A DNA stretch of 64,000 nucleotides, taken from the sequence record OP310983.1; one strand, given 5' to 3'. The notes under the pieces were generated by a model, which was given only the letters and a program-made list of their open reading frames with translations, did not search any database and was not told the DNA's origin. Positions within the stretch are counted from its first letter, which is position 1. Every line of letters starts with the position of its first letter. A program made the position numbers and the translations under genes. This document shows, piece after piece, positions 3,596 through 60,680 of this stretch.

Positions 3596-3667
3596 TTATG
3601 CCTTTAATACCTTCTAATTTGCTCTATAATCGATTTTATTCATTATTCACTAGCATATTAGCCATAC

Positions 3668-3698
3668 GACATAAAAGCCCTCCTAAGAGGGCTAAAAT
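3668..3698 (-). terminator. terminator for leftward unit
   Basis: AGCCCTC-ctaa-GAGGGCT (3676-3693) immediately past stop of 3702..3938. Confidence 0.65.
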
Positions 3699-3701
3699 GC
3701 T

Positions 3702-3938
3702 TTATTTTTCATTAGTTGGATATAGGAGTACAATAGACTCTGCGCATACTTTAATAACTTGGATATTTTCACTGTCATTATTTTTTGATTGTTTATTTTT
3801 AACGCAGTATTCAAATTGTTGGGATTTGAGTTTATATACGTTATTGTTCTCTTCTCCCAGTATTCCTCCAAATACCAATCCTAGGATAAATATTAATAAA
3901 CCACCAATAAAGATAATATAAACATTACCATAGTACAT
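3702..3938 (-). CDS. small membrane protein (N-terminal TM helix)
   Basis: VYIIFIGGLLIFILGLVFGGIL hydrophobic segment; abuts 3940..4308. Confidence 0.65.
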   Translation of the reverse strand: MYYGNVYIIFIGGLLIFILGLVFGGILGEENNNVYKLKSQQFEYCVKNKQSKNNDSENIQVIKVCAESIVLLYPTNEK

Positions 3939-6655: not shown

Positions 6656-8899
6656 ATGAGCGTACATGCCCTAAGAGAACTGTTTAAACACAAAGGCGAA
6701 AAGAATTACGAAGTCTTCTCAATGGAAGATTTCATTGGCCGCCTAGAAAGTGAAATTGGTCTAAATGACAGCGTTGTTAGTCAAGGTCGTTCCCTTATTA
6801 GCAGCATTTCACATGAAAACTTCGGTACCGTGCAAGCTACCGACATTCAAGATGCCGCTGCAATTTATAACAAAATGCAAATGCTCGTTAACGACTATGG
6901 TTTCGAACGAGTAAGTTCCAGTGATCCTCAAGTACGTGCTCGTGAAGAACGTGTCCGTGAGAACCAAATCACTGCTGCTACCATGGCTGCTATCGCCTGT
7001 GCTGATGAAACTAAATATATCCGTGCACTACGTGGTATTACCAAAGCTAAAGCTTCTAATGAAGATCATGTTAAGGTTGTACAGCATCAGTTCAATGGCC
7101 CTGCTGGTGGCATTCAAGTATTCGAAAATGGTGTTGGCCTAGAGAACTATAACGAGAAGTCACAGCGTGATTTCCGTGTTGTAACTATTGGTTATAACCT
7201 AGCTGCTAGCCGTCAGGATGAATTCGCTGAGCGTATCTATCCGACCACCGTTATCAACCCGATTGAAGGTGGTGTTGTTCAGGTTCTTCCTTACATCGCT
7301 GTAATGAAAGACGTTTACCACGAAGTATCCGGCGTTAAGATGGATAACGAAGAAGTGAACATGGTAGAAGCCTATCGTGATCCTTCCATCCTCGACGACG
7401 AAAGCATTGCACTAATTCCTGCCCTAGATCCGGCTGGTTCCAATGCTGACTTCTTCGTAGACCCGGCTCTTGTTCCTCCGTACACCATCAAGAACGAGCA
7501 GAACCTAACTATCACTACTGCTCCGCTAAAAGCGAACGTACGTCTTGATCTAATGGGTAACTCCAATGCTAACCTACTCATCCAGCGTGGCATGCTTGAA
7601 GTTTCTGACACCATTGATCCGGCTGGTCGTCTAAAGAACCTATTCGTTCTACTCGGTGGTAAAGTTGTTAAGTTCAAGGTTGACCGTCTACCTCGCGCTG
7701 TGTTCCAGCCCGATCTAGTTGGTGATACCCGGAACGCTGTTATCCGTTTCGATAGCGACGATCTAGTTGTTAGTGGCGATACCACTTTCATCGATGGTTC
7801 AGCTGACGGTGTTATCAATGATCTTAAGACCGCTAAACTAAGCCTACGTCTAAGCGTTGGTTTTGGTGGTACAATCAGCCTATCCAAAGGCGATTCTAAG
7901 TTTGGTGCTACCGACACTTACGTCGATAAAGTTCTAAACGAAGATGGTCAGGTAATGGATAATGCTGACCCGGCTGTTAAAGCTATTCTAGATCAGCTAA
8001 CTGACCTAGCGGTTATCGGTTTCGAACTAGACACTCGCTTCACCAACACTAACCGTCGTCAGCGTGGTCACCTACTACAGACCCGTGCGCTACAGTTCCG
8101 TCATCCGATCCCGATGCACGCTCCTGTAACTCTACCGATGGACACCATGACCGATGAAGGTCCGGGTGAGGTTGTTAAAGCTCTAACTGTTAACACCAAC
8201 ATCCGTAACAGCAACAACGCTGTTAAGCGCATGCTTAACTACCTTGCTCAACTACGTGAAGTTGTACACAATGGTTACAACCGTCCGAAGTTTGGTATCA
8301 TCGAAGGTGCACTATCCGCTGTAATGCGTCCGACCTATCGTTACAAAGAACTAGATCTTGAGAAAGTCATCGACACCATCAAGTCTAAAGATCGTTGGGA
8401 CGACGTTTGCGCTGCGATCCTAAACTGTGTTAAAGCTGAGCTATTCCCGGCTCACCGTGATTCCAACATTGAAGCTGCCTTCCGTGTTATCTCCGGTAAC
8501 CAGGATGAAACTCCGATGTATCTCTTCTGCTCCGACAAAGAGATTGCTAACTATCTAATGACTAAAGGTGACGACCGTACTCTAGGTGCTTATCTCAAGT
8601 ACGATATCGTTTCCACCAACAACCAGCTATTTGATGGTAAGCTAGTTGTAATTCCGACCCGCGCAGTACAACAAGAAAACGACATCCTCTCCTGGGGCCA
8701 GTTCTTCTACGTATCTACTGTTATCGCTGACCTACCGATCACTCGTGGTGGTCACCAGGTTACTCGCGAAATCGCGGCCATTCCGTTCAACCTACACGTC
8801 AACAACATTCCGTTCGCGCTAGAGTTCAAGATCACTGGCTTCCAGAAAGTCATGGGCGAAACTCAGTTCAACGGTAAGCTTGCTGATCTTAAGCCGTGA
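6656..8899 (+). CDS. gp120: major capsid protein (747 aa), propeptide removed at ...GVGLE|NYNEK
   Basis: Length and sequence recognised as phiKZ gp120; strongly biased codon usage; S/A/G-x-E protease sites in N-terminal part. Confidence 0.95.
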   Translation: MSVHALRELFKHKGEKNYEVFSMEDFIGRLESEIGLNDSVVSQGRSLISSISHENFGTVQATDIQDAAAIYNKMQMLVNDYGFERVSSSDPQVRAREERVRENQITAATMAAIACADETKYIRALRGITKAKASNEDHVKVVQHQFNGPAGGIQVFENGVGLENYNEKSQRDFRVVTIGYNLAASRQDEFAERIYPTTVINPIEGGVVQVLPYIAVMKDVYHEVSGVKMDNEEVNMVEAYRDPSILDDESIALIPALDPAGSNADFFVDPALVPPYTIKNEQNLTITTAPLKANVRLDLMGNSNANLLIQRGMLEVSDTIDPAGRLKNLFVLLGGKVVKFKVDRLPRAVFQPDLVGDTRNAVIRFDSDDLVVSGDTTFIDGSADGVINDLKTAKLSLRLSVGFGGTISLSKGDSKFGATDTYVDKVLNEDGQVMDNADPAVKAILDQLTDLAVIGFELDTRFTNTNRRQRGHLLQTRALQFRHPIPMHAPVTLPMDTMTDEGPGEVVKALTVNTNIRNSNNAVKRMLNYLAQLREVVHNGYNRPKFGIIEGALSAVMRPTYRYKELDLEKVIDTIKSKDRWDDVCAAILNCVKAELFPAHRDSNIEAAFRVISGNQDETPMYLFCSDKEIANYLMTKGDDRTLGAYLKYDIVSTNNQLFDGKLVVIPTRAVQQENDILSWGQFFYVSTVIADLPITRGGHQVTREIAAIPFNLHVNNIPFALEFKITGFQKVMGETQFNGKLADLKP

Positions 8900-8980
8900 G
8901 CTGGAAAGGGTTACCGTTATCTAGAAAATGGGACTATCCGTTATTTGGAAGACGGTAATGCCCGGAAGTTAGAAGAGTAA
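8900..8980 (+). other. in-frame 26-codon extension after capsid UGA (candidate readthrough tail)
   Basis: AGKGYRYLENGTIRYLEDGNARKLEE*; same frame as gp120; no own start or SD; terminator only after the TAA. Confidence 0.7.
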
Positions 8981-8984
8981 CAGA

Positions 8985-9015
8985 CATAGGCCCTCCCTTC
9001 GGGGAGGGCTTTATG
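8985..9015 (+). terminator. intrinsic terminator after capsid extension
   Basis: CATAG-GCCCTCCC-ttcg-GGGAGGGC-TTTATG. Confidence 0.85.
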
Positions 9016-9020
9016 TTGTA

Positions 9021-9054
9021 TTACATTAAAAAAAGTTTAAGATCTATATTACAG
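9021..9054 (+). promoter_or_regulatory. early (vRNAP) promoter
   Basis: TATATTAC at 9045-9052 (phiKZ early consensus) with upstream A-tract; 33/34 identical to 60736-60769. Confidence 0.8.
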
Positions 9055-9095
9055 TAATGATCATGATCTTCTAATTTAAAAATAGGTTAATCCAA

Positions 9096-9548
9096 ATGAA
9101 CGTTCAATTATTTCCAGAAGTCATCGAAAGATGGCAAGATGCCCTAAGGGTATCTCTTATAGAAAAAAATACCATGGTAGATAATAAGATGTCTACCGTA
9201 GATGATGATAAATACATTAATACTTTCTTTGAAGAATTCCATCCTGTTCAGGATGCCTTTATGCCCAAAGGGCTAGAGGACTTTATTACTGATTATGCCA
9301 AGAAAAACATTGAGGAGATCCTTCAAGAAAAACAGTTTAAGCGGGCCACCGAAAAGTTATATTGTTCGAGTGACCCGCATAAATGGCAGAAATCAAGTAA
9401 TAAGGAAAAGAGTGAATCCTTTAAGGGAAGGTCCGTACATCAAACTAAAAAGAGGCTCCCCAACATTGTAGATTTGGAGGCCGTTGTGATTAAGGTAGAT
9501 TTCAATGGTAATACTAAAAATTGCGGGGCTTACTCAAGTATCAGTTAA
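9096..9548 (+). CDS. hypothetical protein (gp121)
   Basis: TAGG SD, downstream of early promoter. Confidence 0.7.
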   Translation: MNVQLFPEVIERWQDALRVSLIEKNTMVDNKMSTVDDDKYINTFFEEFHPVQDAFMPKGLEDFITDYAKKNIEEILQEKQFKRATEKLYCSSDPHKWQKSSNKEKSESFKGRSVHQTKKRLPNIVDLEAVVIKVDFNGNTKNCGAYSSIS

Positions 9549-34081: not shown

Positions 34082-34615
34082 ATGCAGGATATCTTTCCGT
34101 ATGACATGGCATCGAGGAATGCGCTAGTAAAACTTGCGCGGGATGATTTAAAAATAAACTTCAAACCAGAAACAGTTACATTTGAAGATATGTTTTTTAG
34201 TCCAACCACGATTGAGCCTGGACGTACATTTATTGAAATGATCGACATCACTACTGACATTAAGTACATGTTAACTTACCGTCGGTTAGATTTTGCTGAT
34301 CCACGTGCTATTGGTGAAGGATCTATCCTTAAGATAGTTGGTACTTTAACACCTAAAGCAATTGCTGAAGAAATTAACCGTTCACGAGGTTGGAAGCTTG
34401 GTCCAGATGATGTTTCATTTGATACAACACCAATCAATGCAACTACGGATGTTGTTCCATACACGATAGTAGCTATGTCGAGTAGCTATGCTTACTATGG
34501 TGAATGTAATATACTAATCCAACGTATTGATGATACGTCAGATACTATCCGACTATTAGAGAATGGTGCAGCACGTTATCTAGAAAATGGTCAAATCCGT
34601 TATCTAGAAAGTTAA
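34082..34615 (+). CDS. virion-type protein with YxRLD motif and C-terminal RxLENG repeats (gp143)
   Basis: LTYRRLDF; ends RLLENGAARYLENGQIRYLES. Confidence 0.75.
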   Translation: MQDIFPYDMASRNALVKLARDDLKINFKPETVTFEDMFFSPTTIEPGRTFIEMIDITTDIKYMLTYRRLDFADPRAIGEGSILKIVGTLTPKAIAEEINRSRGWKLGPDDVSFDTTPINATTDVVPYTIVAMSSSYAYYGECNILIQRIDDTSDTIRLLENGAARYLENGQIRYLES

Positions 34616-41447: not shown

Positions 41448-42164
41448 TCATGGCTTAAACATGGAAAAGTATTCAGCATCGATGAAATCAAAGTCGATAT
41501 TAAGTTTATGCTTTAACTGGAAATCCATGATAATAAACTGTTTATCTTCAACAGCTAATTCACTTACATCTTTCTCAAATAGTTTTGGACCAATAATAGT
41601 AAAGTCAGGCATCAACACTTGTCCTAATTCAAGAACATGGGTTTTACACCATTCTCCAAAATTATACATAATCGCCATTGAATAGATAGAGTTTAATCTA
41701 GAACAAGTAAGGTCTGTTAATGGAGTATTAATCAGGGTGATCTGAATATGATCACCAATGTACTTATGTAAGCAGTATAGTAATTCATCTTGAGCATCTG
41801 GTGTTAATTCATATGGCCAGATATTAACTTCAAGACATGTTTCAAAATTAGCATTAACTATACCGTCTAATCTATTCAAATCTGATTGAGCTATTAATTG
41901 AATAATAAATGGAATGATACCAGTGAATATAGAACTATTGATAGTATCAGCAGTATTTTCGCCACCACGTTTAGAATAAGCTTCGACAAATTGTTCATTA
42001 GTTACTAAACCATCTGTTAGTTTAGTCCAATCATCCATTTCCCTATGCCAATAAACTTGACCATTGGTAACAAGCTTATTAGCCGCATCTTTATTTAGTA
42101 ACCTAATGGTCCCTAACCGTGTATCTAATAGTGAATCAAGATCAATTAAGATTTTACGAAACAT
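41448..42164 (-). CDS. HAD-like protein (gp147)
   Basis: N-terminal ILIDLDSLL (DxD) HAD motif I. Confidence 0.5.
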   Translation of the reverse strand: MFRKILIDLDSLLDTRLGTIRLLNKDAANKLVTNGQVYWHREMDDWTKLTDGLVTNEQFVEAYSKRGGENTADTINSSIFTGIIPFIIQLIAQSDLNRLDGIVNANFETCLEVNIWPYELTPDAQDELLYCLHKYIGDHIQITLINTPLTDLTCSRLNSIYSMAIMYNFGEWCKTHVLELGQVLMPDFTIIGPKLFEKDVSELAVEDKQFIIMDFQLKHKLNIDFDFIDAEYFSMFKP

Positions 42165-46638: not shown

Positions 46639-47058
46639 TCAATTTGGAATACACTTCTCATGTAAACTTAATTTAAAGAGGGTTTTCAAATCCTTTAAAA
46701 AAGTTGCATCATCAGCATATTTCATCCAACACGGAGTCTTACGAATAAGCCTCATGAAAAATTGATCAGTGGTTAGATCTGCTTTATCAATCTTATCGAT
46801 TGCTATCACGCCTTTCCATACGTACGGCCCATAATGAATAGGGAGTCGTAAGGCAGCTTCATCGCGTACTAGTTTCATGTTAGAATTCAAATGAGAGATC
46901 TTTTCACACTCATTTGTCTTACACTGTACTATAACGGAGTACAGTGACGCCATGACGCACATCCGCTTTAGTTCGGGATCAGCATAGTCCCAGAGCTTAA
47001 TCCAAATTGCCCTGAAACCATTCTTAACCGACTTTTTGAATCTGCTAATAAGGTTCAT
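46639..47058 (-). CDS. hypothetical protein (gp154)
   Basis: Track ORF to 47124; likely start MNLISR at 47058, avoiding overlap with RNase H. Confidence 0.65.
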   Translation of the reverse strand: MNLISRFKKSVKNGFRAIWIKLWDYADPELKRMCVMASLYSVIVQCKTNECEKISHLNSNMKLVRDEAALRLPIHYGPYVWKGVIAIDKIDKADLTTDQFFMRLIRKTPCWMKYADDATFLKDLKTLFKLSLHEKCIPN

Positions 47059-47068
47059 GGAATACCCA

Positions 47069-48517
47069 CTATTTTGGGAGAATAAATTGTGTATAGGGTG
47101 ATTGATAGATAGCTGAGCCATCATCCGTCACGAACACAATTGAATATGAATAAGAATATGGGCCTTCAGCTACTACAAGAATTTCCATTTTAACTTTATT
47201 AGCTCCAATGCGAGCTAATTGGTTTCTACTTGGAATATCGATATTTAATACAAGCTTTAATTTTATCTTACGATCTTTAAATGTGATCGGAACTTCTACA
47301 AAGCCTGTATTAGATGTAATCGTCTTAAGTAGTTGATAGCCAACTTTCTTACCCTTTGCGACTTCCTCGAAGAAGTGCTCGGTAATATTAATAATACCAA
47401 CCGACTCTCCAAGTTTACCAGCCAAGTAATCTTCAAGACGACTGCGCATAACATTAAATGTAGCTACAGCATCATTTGCCATACGTGGTGGATTAAGAGT
47501 CCGACTAATGAGTTCATCTGTTGGCGTCGACAAAACATTGATATCTTTCCATACGACTAGAGCAGGTAGCCCCATGGATTCAATTTTCTGTCGAATGGTT
47601 GCACGATATGCGTTTGCCAAATTGATGATACCCAGTTCTGGATTTTCAGTACCCAGTGCTTCTGTATGCATATTAATTAGTAACTGGAGATACTCATCTG
47701 GTTCATTTGCCTTATATACACTGAAGGTTGCTTCAGAGATACGACGCCCTAAAATTAAATCAGCTTTAGCTAATTTATCTTTAGCAGTGTCTTTTGGTTT
47801 ATGACCATAGTTATGCATACGACCTAAGTTATAGGTGTAATAGAACCCATCTGGTTCTTCTCCAGAGTTAATGGCGAAGAGTAACCTACTTTCGAGGATA
47901 AGTGGATTAACAACTTGTTTTTTAAGTTTGTTAATTTCCTCGCCTTTAACCGAAACCATCACTGGCTTATCATTATTCTGTCCCGAACCAAGCTTAGCGT
48001 TAGCATCAGCTTTTTCATTACCAATGTCTCCGTTATGTCCACGGACCCATTGGATGCTTAATGGTTTATTAGTTTCTTCCCATTTAGCTTTTAGTTCGAC
48101 CATCTGTTTCCATAGGTCCTGGTTTGCTACCGGCGTGCCGTCTGATTTAATCCAATTAGACTTAATCCATTTGGGTAAATATGCGGTCATACCTTTTCTA
48201 ACGTATTCACTATCCATGAGCATCGTTAGTCTAGGAGCATCTGCTTCATGAGCTATTTTGAAAGCCTCAATTGCAGCGGTTAGCTCACCTGTATTATTAG
48301 TAGGGTTATTAGTTACACTACCAAATGCATCAATATAATTTAAAACAGTGCATGTCTCATCTGCACCTACATCTAAGTATCCCTTAGCTGTTGGTTGCTG
48401 TTTGGTGGCTGCTTTAGATTTCATTGCAACATTTTCATAGGTATAACCATGAATACCCCAACCAGCTTTACCCTGTCGGAATGATCCGTCAGTGTATAAA
48501 ACCATACCGTCTGCCAT
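47069..48517 (-). CDS. rnhA: ribonuclease HI with long C-terminal extension (gp155)
   Basis: YTDGS, TNNTGEL, DSEYV, NQDLW, WVRGHNGDIGNEKAD RNase H motifs. Confidence 0.92.
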   Translation of the reverse strand: MADGMVLYTDGSFRQGKAGWGIHGYTYENVAMKSKAATKQQPTAKGYLDVGADETCTVLNYIDAFGSVTNNPTNNTGELTAAIEAFKIAHEADAPRLTMLMDSEYVRKGMTAYLPKWIKSNWIKSDGTPVANQDLWKQMVELKAKWEETNKPLSIQWVRGHNGDIGNEKADANAKLGSGQNNDKPVMVSVKGEEINKLKKQVVNPLILESRLLFAINSGEEPDGFYYTYNLGRMHNYGHKPKDTAKDKLAKADLILGRRISEATFSVYKANEPDEYLQLLINMHTEALGTENPELGIINLANAYRATIRQKIESMGLPALVVWKDINVLSTPTDELISRTLNPPRMANDAVATFNVMRSRLEDYLAGKLGESVGIINITEHFFEEVAKGKKVGYQLLKTITSNTGFVEVPITFKDRKIKLKLVLNIDIPSRNQLARIGANKVKMEILVVAEGPYSYSYSIVFVTDDGSAIYQSPYTQFILPK

Positions 48518-60284: not shown

Positions 60285-60680
60285 ATGTTTAATCAACAAT
60301 ATAATCCAAATAGTTCAGCTAAGGTAATGGAGACATTACATGCCTGTGCTAAACTTATTAAGGAAATGTTTTATTATAATGATCAATATGTTCAAGTAGA
60401 ATCGGCTTATACAGATGATCCAATCCAAGCATCCATTGAAACAGTAAATGATGGGTATTACAGATTAGTTATTCAAGACACCACACCAGATAGTACGTGG
60501 CCAGTGTGGGCAGTTGTTTTTATCAGACAACGTGGTGGAGATATTAAGTGTCTCCATATTATCAATCGTATTACTGGAGTATCTGCAAATATAGATACGC
60601 AATTCAACTGTGATTCTTTTTACTCTGTTATTGATTTACTATTAGATCATTATCGAGTATTAACTTCGATGGAATACTGA
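60285..60680 (+). CDS. early hypothetical protein
   Basis: GAGGT SD; downstream of early promoter. Confidence 0.75.
   Translation: MFNQQYNPNSSAKVMETLHACAKLIKEMFYYNDQYVQVESAYTDDPIQASIETVNDGYYRLVIQDTTPDSTWPVWAVVFIRQRGGDIKCLHIINRITGVSANIDTQFNCDSFYSVIDLLLDHYRVLTSMEY

Follow-up and report, generated by a model that had tools for sequence, protein, structure and literature searches.

Does the major capsid gene of the jumbo phage phiKZ end at its annotated stop codon, or is a further stretch of protein encoded behind it? The 64,000-nucleotide stretch of sequence record OP310983.1 analyzed here (the window) includes the gene for the major capsid protein gp120, whose TGA stop codon is followed in the same frame by 26 open codons, a second stop codon (TAA), and a hairpin resembling an intrinsic transcription terminator. 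A first-pass annotation of this sequence proposed that programmed readthrough of the UGA adds a tail of repeats to the capsid protein. All of these elements were found at the positions that it gave (Table 1), with a terminator hairpin slightly longer than the one listed (8990 to 9009). Comparison with related phages leads us to consider it probable that, through a conserved, leaky UGA, a minor form of the capsid protein is made whose docking tail is exposed.

phiKZ is the model nucleus-forming jumbo phage, with a capsid solved at near-atomic resolution and a catalogued virion proteome, and the putative product is still unannotated: the extension is annotated in 0 of 47 phiKZ-species records and in no genome record of a relative that we examined. 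Positions 8500 to 9300 of the window are 100% identical to positions 120112 to 120912 of the phiKZ record AF399011, and the gp120 coding sequence is 100% identical to that of phiKZ records in which it is labeled "major head protein." In agreement with the first-pass annotation, which knew of no description of the extension for phiKZ, our literature search found nothing relevant on gp120 readthrough, on the two tryptic tail peptides, or on readthrough in jumbo phages.

Conservation of the reading frame behind the capsid stop codon

DNA similarity between phiKZ and other genera continues beyond the capsid stop codon. A TGA followed by an in-frame repeat tail occurs in PhiPA3, PS119XW, HPP-Temi, Phabio, Psa21, D6, 201phi2-1, Viktualia, Noxifer, and RVTF4, as well as in 16 further IMG/VR or metagenome sequences. 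The 27 distinct octad tails (i.e., tails built from 8-residue repeats) are 24 to 30 codons long and differ by whole codons. As capsid C-terminal identity falls from 100% to ~58%, these relatives retain their TGA, open frame, and repeat motif. Absence of a conserved open tail or motif from related phages had been set beforehand as the finding that would tell against readthrough; both are kept in 27 distinct relatives. In the more distant chimalliviruses Erwinia Deimos-Minion, DT01, OBP, and RSL2, TAA terminates the capsid gene and no extension follows. Within the phiKZ species, the tail is identical across the 47 records except for its last codon (8975 to 8977), which is a stop codon in 8 of them (L037, L038, and six more). 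This change, the only tail polymorphism in the species, trims the tail by one residue and gives the same ending as in several other genera.

In the octads of the gp120 tail, the first residue is Arg, the fourth is Glu, and the sixth is Gly. Across the 27 tails, the conserved columns are Arg (27/27), Glu (27/27), and Gly (27/27), followed by Arg (26/27), Glu (26/27), and Gly (27/27), and they are spelled by two to five synonymous codons each, including switches between CGN and AGR and all four Gly codons. The region is open in frame 0 in all 27 sequences, in frame +1 in 3, and in frame +2 in 5. A T7-type frameshift was rejected because the extension lies in frame 0 and the shifted frames contain stop codons in 24 and 22 of the 27 relatives, respectively.

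Codon diversity at the invariant columns and counts from close pairs were used in place of a pooled ratio of nonsynonymous to synonymous substitution rates. The tails of PS119XW and HPP-Temi differ by four synonymous and no nonsynonymous changes, and six close pairs together show 24 synonymous versus 13 nonsynonymous codon differences, a coding-type pattern that bears out the synonymous bias sought in the first-pass annotation. In the first nine genomes, the pooled proportion of synonymous differences in the tail (pS) was 0.53 and that of nonsynonymous differences (pN) was 0.28. Among 20 sequences, the tail pN/pS was 0.63 in frame 0 and 0.81 and 1.03 in the shifted frames, compared with 0.21 for the capsid body. 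Constraint on the tail is thus weaker than on the capsid body, yet the coding signature of the tail is frame specific.

The identity of the capsid stop codon follows the presence of the extension. Among 44 distinct capsid gene ends compiled from relatives, an extension is present behind TGA in 28 (the 27 octad tails and one longer extension) and behind TAA in 1 (L115), and it is absent behind TAA in 15 and behind TGA in none (Fisher's exact test for the association of TGA with the extension, P = 7e-11, uncorrected for shared ancestry). When the capsid C-terminal region is placed on a neighbor-joining tree, sequences with TAA and no tail fall within groups that have TGA and a tail, or as sisters to them, on at least five occasions (L124, L125, L135, L083, and L131/L132 beside L074). 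The base after the first stop codon is A in 20, G in 6, C in 2, and never T among the extension bearers, and it is A in 0 of 16 tail-less TAA stops. The second stop codon of the octad tails varies (TAA in 16, TGA in 6, and TAG in 4). A constant TGA, a distinctive stop context, and a variable second stop are what selection for a leaky stop codon would predict.

Two metagenomic relatives have longer frames behind the capsid stop codon, of 203 codons in L106 (TGA) and 95 codons in L115 (TAA). Both encode a match to the immunoglobulin (Ig)-like Pfam domain Big_2 (PF02368; 36.7 and 30.1 bits, respectively; cutoff, 22.8) that begins at residue 2 to 4 after the stop codon. In L115, the domain is followed by an octad module at the end, and no usable start codon is present. 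A Pfam search with the 26-residue phiKZ tail gave no match, so the phiKZ tail contains no Big_2 domain. L115 (positions 3640 to 3930; IMG/VR UViG_3300037502_002993) is the only extension bearer with TAA as its first stop codon.

These observations bear on whether the stretch is instead an untranslated RNA or DNA element, such as a 3' untranslated hairpin that stabilizes the capsid mRNA or aids the terminator, with the open frame being incidental. A stable hairpin is indeed predicted inside the extension in phiKZ (minimum free energy, -32.3 kcal/mol; z = -3.05, and z = -4.4 for a shorter piece); in 20 relatives, two short stems of a hand-specified structure are retained in 91% and 95% of cells and include two compensatory pairs; some third-codon bases are fixed while the amino acid varies; and conserved, regulatory-looking motifs abound just downstream. 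The RNAalifold consensus, however, is a weak fold with only a 5-bp stem (-4.2 kcal/mol), and the support for the hairpin is modest because the stems overlap codons that are conserved as protein. Sequence variation follows codon phase, with invariant Arg, Glu, and Gly columns written in many synonymous codons; frame 0 alone is open in all 27 tails; the encoded peptide is the genuine C terminus of another protein family (that of gp143; see below); and relatives encode Big_2 at the same place. An untranslated element also offers no reason for the change from TGA to TAA where the stretch is lost. We therefore regard this explanation as very improbable, and a possible role of the hairpin would be to modulate termination at the UGA.

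Translation of the stretch as a separate small peptide, through termination-reinitiation or a noncanonical start, has a comparably slight probability. L106 has an ATG at the third codon past the stop, and transcription in this region of phiKZ is busy, as shown by the gene beyond the terminator. The L106 purine-rich run, however, ends one base before this ATG, which is too near for a normal ribosome-binding site, and the Big_2 domain of L115 starts at the second residue past the stop, so that an internal start cannot give the whole domain. As the first-pass annotation had claimed, the phiKZ stretch has no start codon of its own: there is no ATG or GTG within 8900 to 8977, the sole in-frame TTG (codon 16) is not kept by relatives, and phiKZ-type tails contain neither a conserved ATG, GTG, or TTG nor a Shine-Dalgarno-like sequence. 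A free 26-residue product would also leave the in-frame position and the tie to TGA unexplained. Small out-of-frame "hypothetical protein" calls over the tail (HPP-Temi, L008 1057 to 1200; Viktualia, L006 1081 to 1179) were set aside, as these frames are closed in most relatives.

Slightly less credible again is a decaying relic, in which a nonsense mutation cut an ancestral, longer C terminus and the codons behind it have drifted since. Losses do occur: in several tail-less relatives (L075 to L077, L079, L032 to L034, L133, and L134), 10 to 15 linker-like residues rich in Thr, Pro, Glu, and Gly directly abut a TAA and terminator, and these ends may be stumps of lost extensions. Drift, however, is expected to introduce stop codons and frameshifts, whereas 27 lineages keep an open frame with whole-codon indels and a synonymous excess, and the first stop codon of the octad tails is always TGA while the second turns over.

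The least probable explanation, decoding of the UGA as selenocysteine with the hairpin as a bacterial selenocysteine insertion sequence (SECIS), would fit the start of the hairpin ~11 nucleotides (nt) past the UGA in phiKZ and the selenocysteine machinery that Pseudomonas aeruginosa possesses, but an Rfam scan of positions 8600 to 9300 gave nothing significant (best E value, 0.34; unrelated families), the conserved stems enclose ~35 nt and vary by clade, unlike a compact SECIS, the hosts are several Pseudomonas species, and an extension also occurs behind TAA in a relative.

The octad module of gp143

The first-pass annotation had noticed that the repeat units of the tail recur in another gene of the window; this gene is gp143, and the repeats form its C terminus. 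The DNA of the gp143 module aligns without gaps to positions 8912 to 8985, with the stop codons in register. Both proteins carry the three octads, placed identically relative to the stop codon and with invariant Arg and Glu. They differ in how the module is reached: in gp143, it follows a DUF7941 domain and is present on every copy by ordinary translation, whereas in gp120, it would require readthrough. The module ends nearly all of 47 gp143 homologs (down to 33% identity), and in a 42-sequence alignment of the family, no octad varies at its Arg or Glu.

Against the DUF7941 profile (PF25613), gp143 itself scores 18.3 bits, below the cutoff of 27; the domain is present in 16 gp143 homologs, and the phiKZ proteins gp126 and gp127 exceed the Pfam cutoff. 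The AlphaFold2 model of gp143 has a predicted local distance difference test (pLDDT) score of 91, and its best Foldseek match is phiKZ gp127 (chain 9xqd_0; E = 1.3e-6; template modeling scores, 0.60/0.70), which is located in the outer peripheral baseplate. This match indicates that gp143 is, as modeled, a DUF7941-fold protein, in agreement with a recent preprint. The tail of the model has pLDDT values of 75 to 86 and beta-bridges every eight residues, a pattern suggestive of a small three-stranded meander. A PDB profile search with the gp143 family returned weak matches only, none of them over the tail, and gp126 and gp127 have no octad tail.

Three labels are in use for gp143: virion structural protein (RefSeq), holin-specific lysis regulator (PMC12894885), and member of the DUF7941 fiber family (Goslar preprint). 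One study reports that DUF7941 proteins link head to tail, with the flexible C-terminal part of one protomer docking on the N-terminal domain of another (10.64898/2026.04.21.720040), and a transposon sequencing (TnSeq) preprint lists gp143 as nonessential. The passages on gp143 consulted in this literature contained no discussion of its octad tail.

Given that the gp143 family has the same module as its natural C terminus, the gp120 tail could be a docking element, and a protein-binding role is plausible on the basis of this shared sequence.

A proposed extended subunit on the capsid

We propose that most ribosomes terminate at the UGA and yield the 747-residue gp120, while a small share would insert a residue, read the 26 codons, and stop at the TAA, ahead of the transcription terminator. 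An equivalent terminator hairpin lies 3' of the second stop codon in all relatives examined, and its position after the second stop in phiKZ had been reported in the first-pass annotation. The inserted residue would most simply be tryptophan, carried by a near-cognate host tRNA. There are no tRNA genes in the window; the phiKZ tRNA cluster comprises seven (Thr-TGT, two Asn-GTT, Asp-GTC, Met-CAT, Pro-TGG, and Leu-TAA), and no suppressor tRNA with a UCA anticodon was found in the window or in this cluster (~166 kb of the genome lies outside the scan), which makes decoding by host tRNA-Trp the default inference. The product would be a minor capsid subunit consisting of gp120, a short linker, and three 8-residue repeats that may act as a small protein-binding element. 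Readthrough of a leaky UGA in enterobacteria is of the order of 1 to 5%. At such rates, some 16 to 80 extended copies would be expected per capsid, so that readthrough would place the docking element on a few tens of the 1620 subunits. Conservation, the coding-type pattern, and the switch between TGA and TAA with the tail thus support the readthrough proposed in the first-pass annotation; synthesis of the extended protein and its docking role are what we infer.

The phiKZ capsid model contains 1620 gp120 chains, built to residue 747, and places the gp120 C terminus on the outer surface, where its C-arm meets the outer decoration protein gp244 at the pentons (PMC11297242). Since the C-arm reaches gp244, an extension would point outward, as do Ig-like display domains. 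Trimming of the tail by the prohead protease was considered and judged unlikely: by the consensus of such proteases, a small residue is looked for two positions before the tail Glu and is absent there, and the C terminus is external.

Extension of coat proteins by recoding is a known phenomenon. The coat gene of Qbeta ends in a leaky UGA followed by an in-frame extension without a start of its own, and the product (A1) is a minor virion component. The phiKZ capsid gene likewise combines a UGA of the leaky type with a start-less, in-frame extension, whose product is expected to be a minor form. In contrast to Qbeta, phiKZ is a 280-kb double-stranded DNA (dsDNA) jumbo phage with a T=27 capsid of the HK97 fold, and the two systems have no sequence relationship; the Qbeta extension is a folded domain of ~200 residues, whereas that of phiKZ consists of 26 residues of octad repeats known from sequence. 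In T7 (10A/10B) and in Listeria, lactococcal, and SPP1-type phages, frameshifting extends capsid or tail proteins and gives minor, C-terminally extended subunits, with Ig-like domains as the typical cargo of such recoding. As proposed for phiKZ, recoding in these cases takes place where an abundant structural gene ends, and phiKZ relatives add Big_2 there. The mechanism differs, as a stop codon separates the phiKZ capsid gene from an extension in the same frame (frame 0), with the other frames closed in most relatives. What would be new is the combination, in a dsDNA jumbo phage, of stop codon readthrough with an octad tag that also occurs on a DUF7941 protein and with alternative modules in relatives.

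Several observations weigh against readthrough to an extended subunit or limit the evidence for it. (i) At least 26 open codons follow the stop in 13 of the 58 nonoverlapping open reading frames (ORFs) of at least 100 amino acids in the window, so that the open tail is not beyond chance within this genome alone, and its significance comes from the comparative data only. (ii) The comparative counts are phylogenetically nonindependent. (iii) L115 has TAA, a poorly suppressed stop codon, ahead of a well-formed extension, which could reflect TAA readthrough, a recent change, or an assembly variant. (iv) The pN/pS value of 0.63 pooled over distant pairs is weak evidence of coding, which is attributable to saturation of synonymous sites and to free variation at half of the tail positions. 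(v) At columns 6 and 23 of the 20-sequence tail alignment (window positions 8912 to 8914 and 8960 to 8962), the third codon base is C in 19/20 and 20/20 sequences, respectively, even though the encoded amino acids vary widely. This points to a nucleotide-level constraint, such as RNA pairing or codon-pair preference, alongside the coding constraint. (vi) Homologs of gp143 retain the module in phages with a tail-less capsid gene (contigs L062/L076, L063/L077, L064/L078, L072/L080, and L061/L083), so neither tail strictly requires the other; the gp143 tail is the wider and presumably the older feature. (vii) The published capsid models end at residue 747, and no extra density is reported for them, which would be equally explained by low occupancy or by disorder.

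A broader idea, tentative and rather doubtful, is that the capsid stop of phiKZ-like chimalliviruses serves as a modular "recoding port" that displays modules on a few percent of the subunits, with the octad tail as a portable address tag that is shared with gp143 and binds its partner. The modules of such a port would be an octad tail, an Ig-like domain with an octad tail, or an Ig-like domain with another domain. Through the tag, a defined number of capsid subunits would be bound to the partner of gp143, for which the DUF7941 fiber network proposed for host finding is a candidate; alternatively, the tag could link capsid production to the timing of lysis, as gp143 also tunes the holin.

If readthrough of the gp120 stop codon does take place, the phiKZ virion would have a new component in the form of a minor, surface-exposed capsid isoform. 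The locus would also provide a clear, conserved case of stop codon readthrough in a dsDNA phage structural gene, where frameshifting is the familiar route, and a short, portable C-terminal module common to gp120 and to gp143, whose role (fiber network or lysis regulator) is debated. The annotation of the capsid gene end in this phage family would change.

Features and further observations in the window

Table 1. Positions of the capsid gene end and of gp143 in the window
Feature	Position	Strand	Basis or description
Major capsid protein gp120 coding sequence, 747 codons	6656..8896	+	ORF list; PF25620 PhiKZ_MCP, E=5e-228
UGA stop codon, proposed site of low-frequency readthrough	8897..8899	+	Next base G here, A in most relatives
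In-frame 26-codon extension	8900..8977	+	Short Gly-rich linker, then three 8-residue repeats, the last truncated
Predicted RNA hairpin inside the extension	8908..8963	+	Starts ~9-11 nt past the UGA
Second stop codon (TAA), end of the proposed extended product	8978..8980	+	
Intrinsic-terminator-like hairpin past the second stop	8988..9011	+	10 pairs, 7 GC, then a T-rich run
gp143, 177 amino acids	34082..34615	+	C terminus is the three-octad module
gp143 three-octad C-terminal module	34550..34612	+	Motif scan; same register to the stop as the gp120 tail

Two conserved motifs lie downstream of the capsid gene. A T-rich motif with TATG, just past the terminator (9008 to 9016), is common to all relatives and is also present in the distant Deimos-Minion, DT01, and RSL2. 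Some 30 nt further (9037 to 9052), the relatives also have in common an AT-rich block ending in TATATTAC; both motifs lie at the same places in L001 to L008 and most IMG/VR loci. We take the TATG motif and the AT-rich block to resemble the late and early promoter motifs reported for phiKZ.

Of the two phage tRNA-Asn genes, one has an unusually great length of 87 to 89 nt (L138, 43946 to 44032; phiKZ record, 269557 to 269645). Stop codon usage in the 58 window ORFs is dominated by TAA (41 ORFs, compared with 10 for TGA and 7 for TAG), in line with the first-pass annotation, and behind the TGA-ending ORFs at 60285 to 60680 (+), 46639 to 47124 (-), and 41448 to 42164 (-), the frame stays open for 18 to 40 or more codons.

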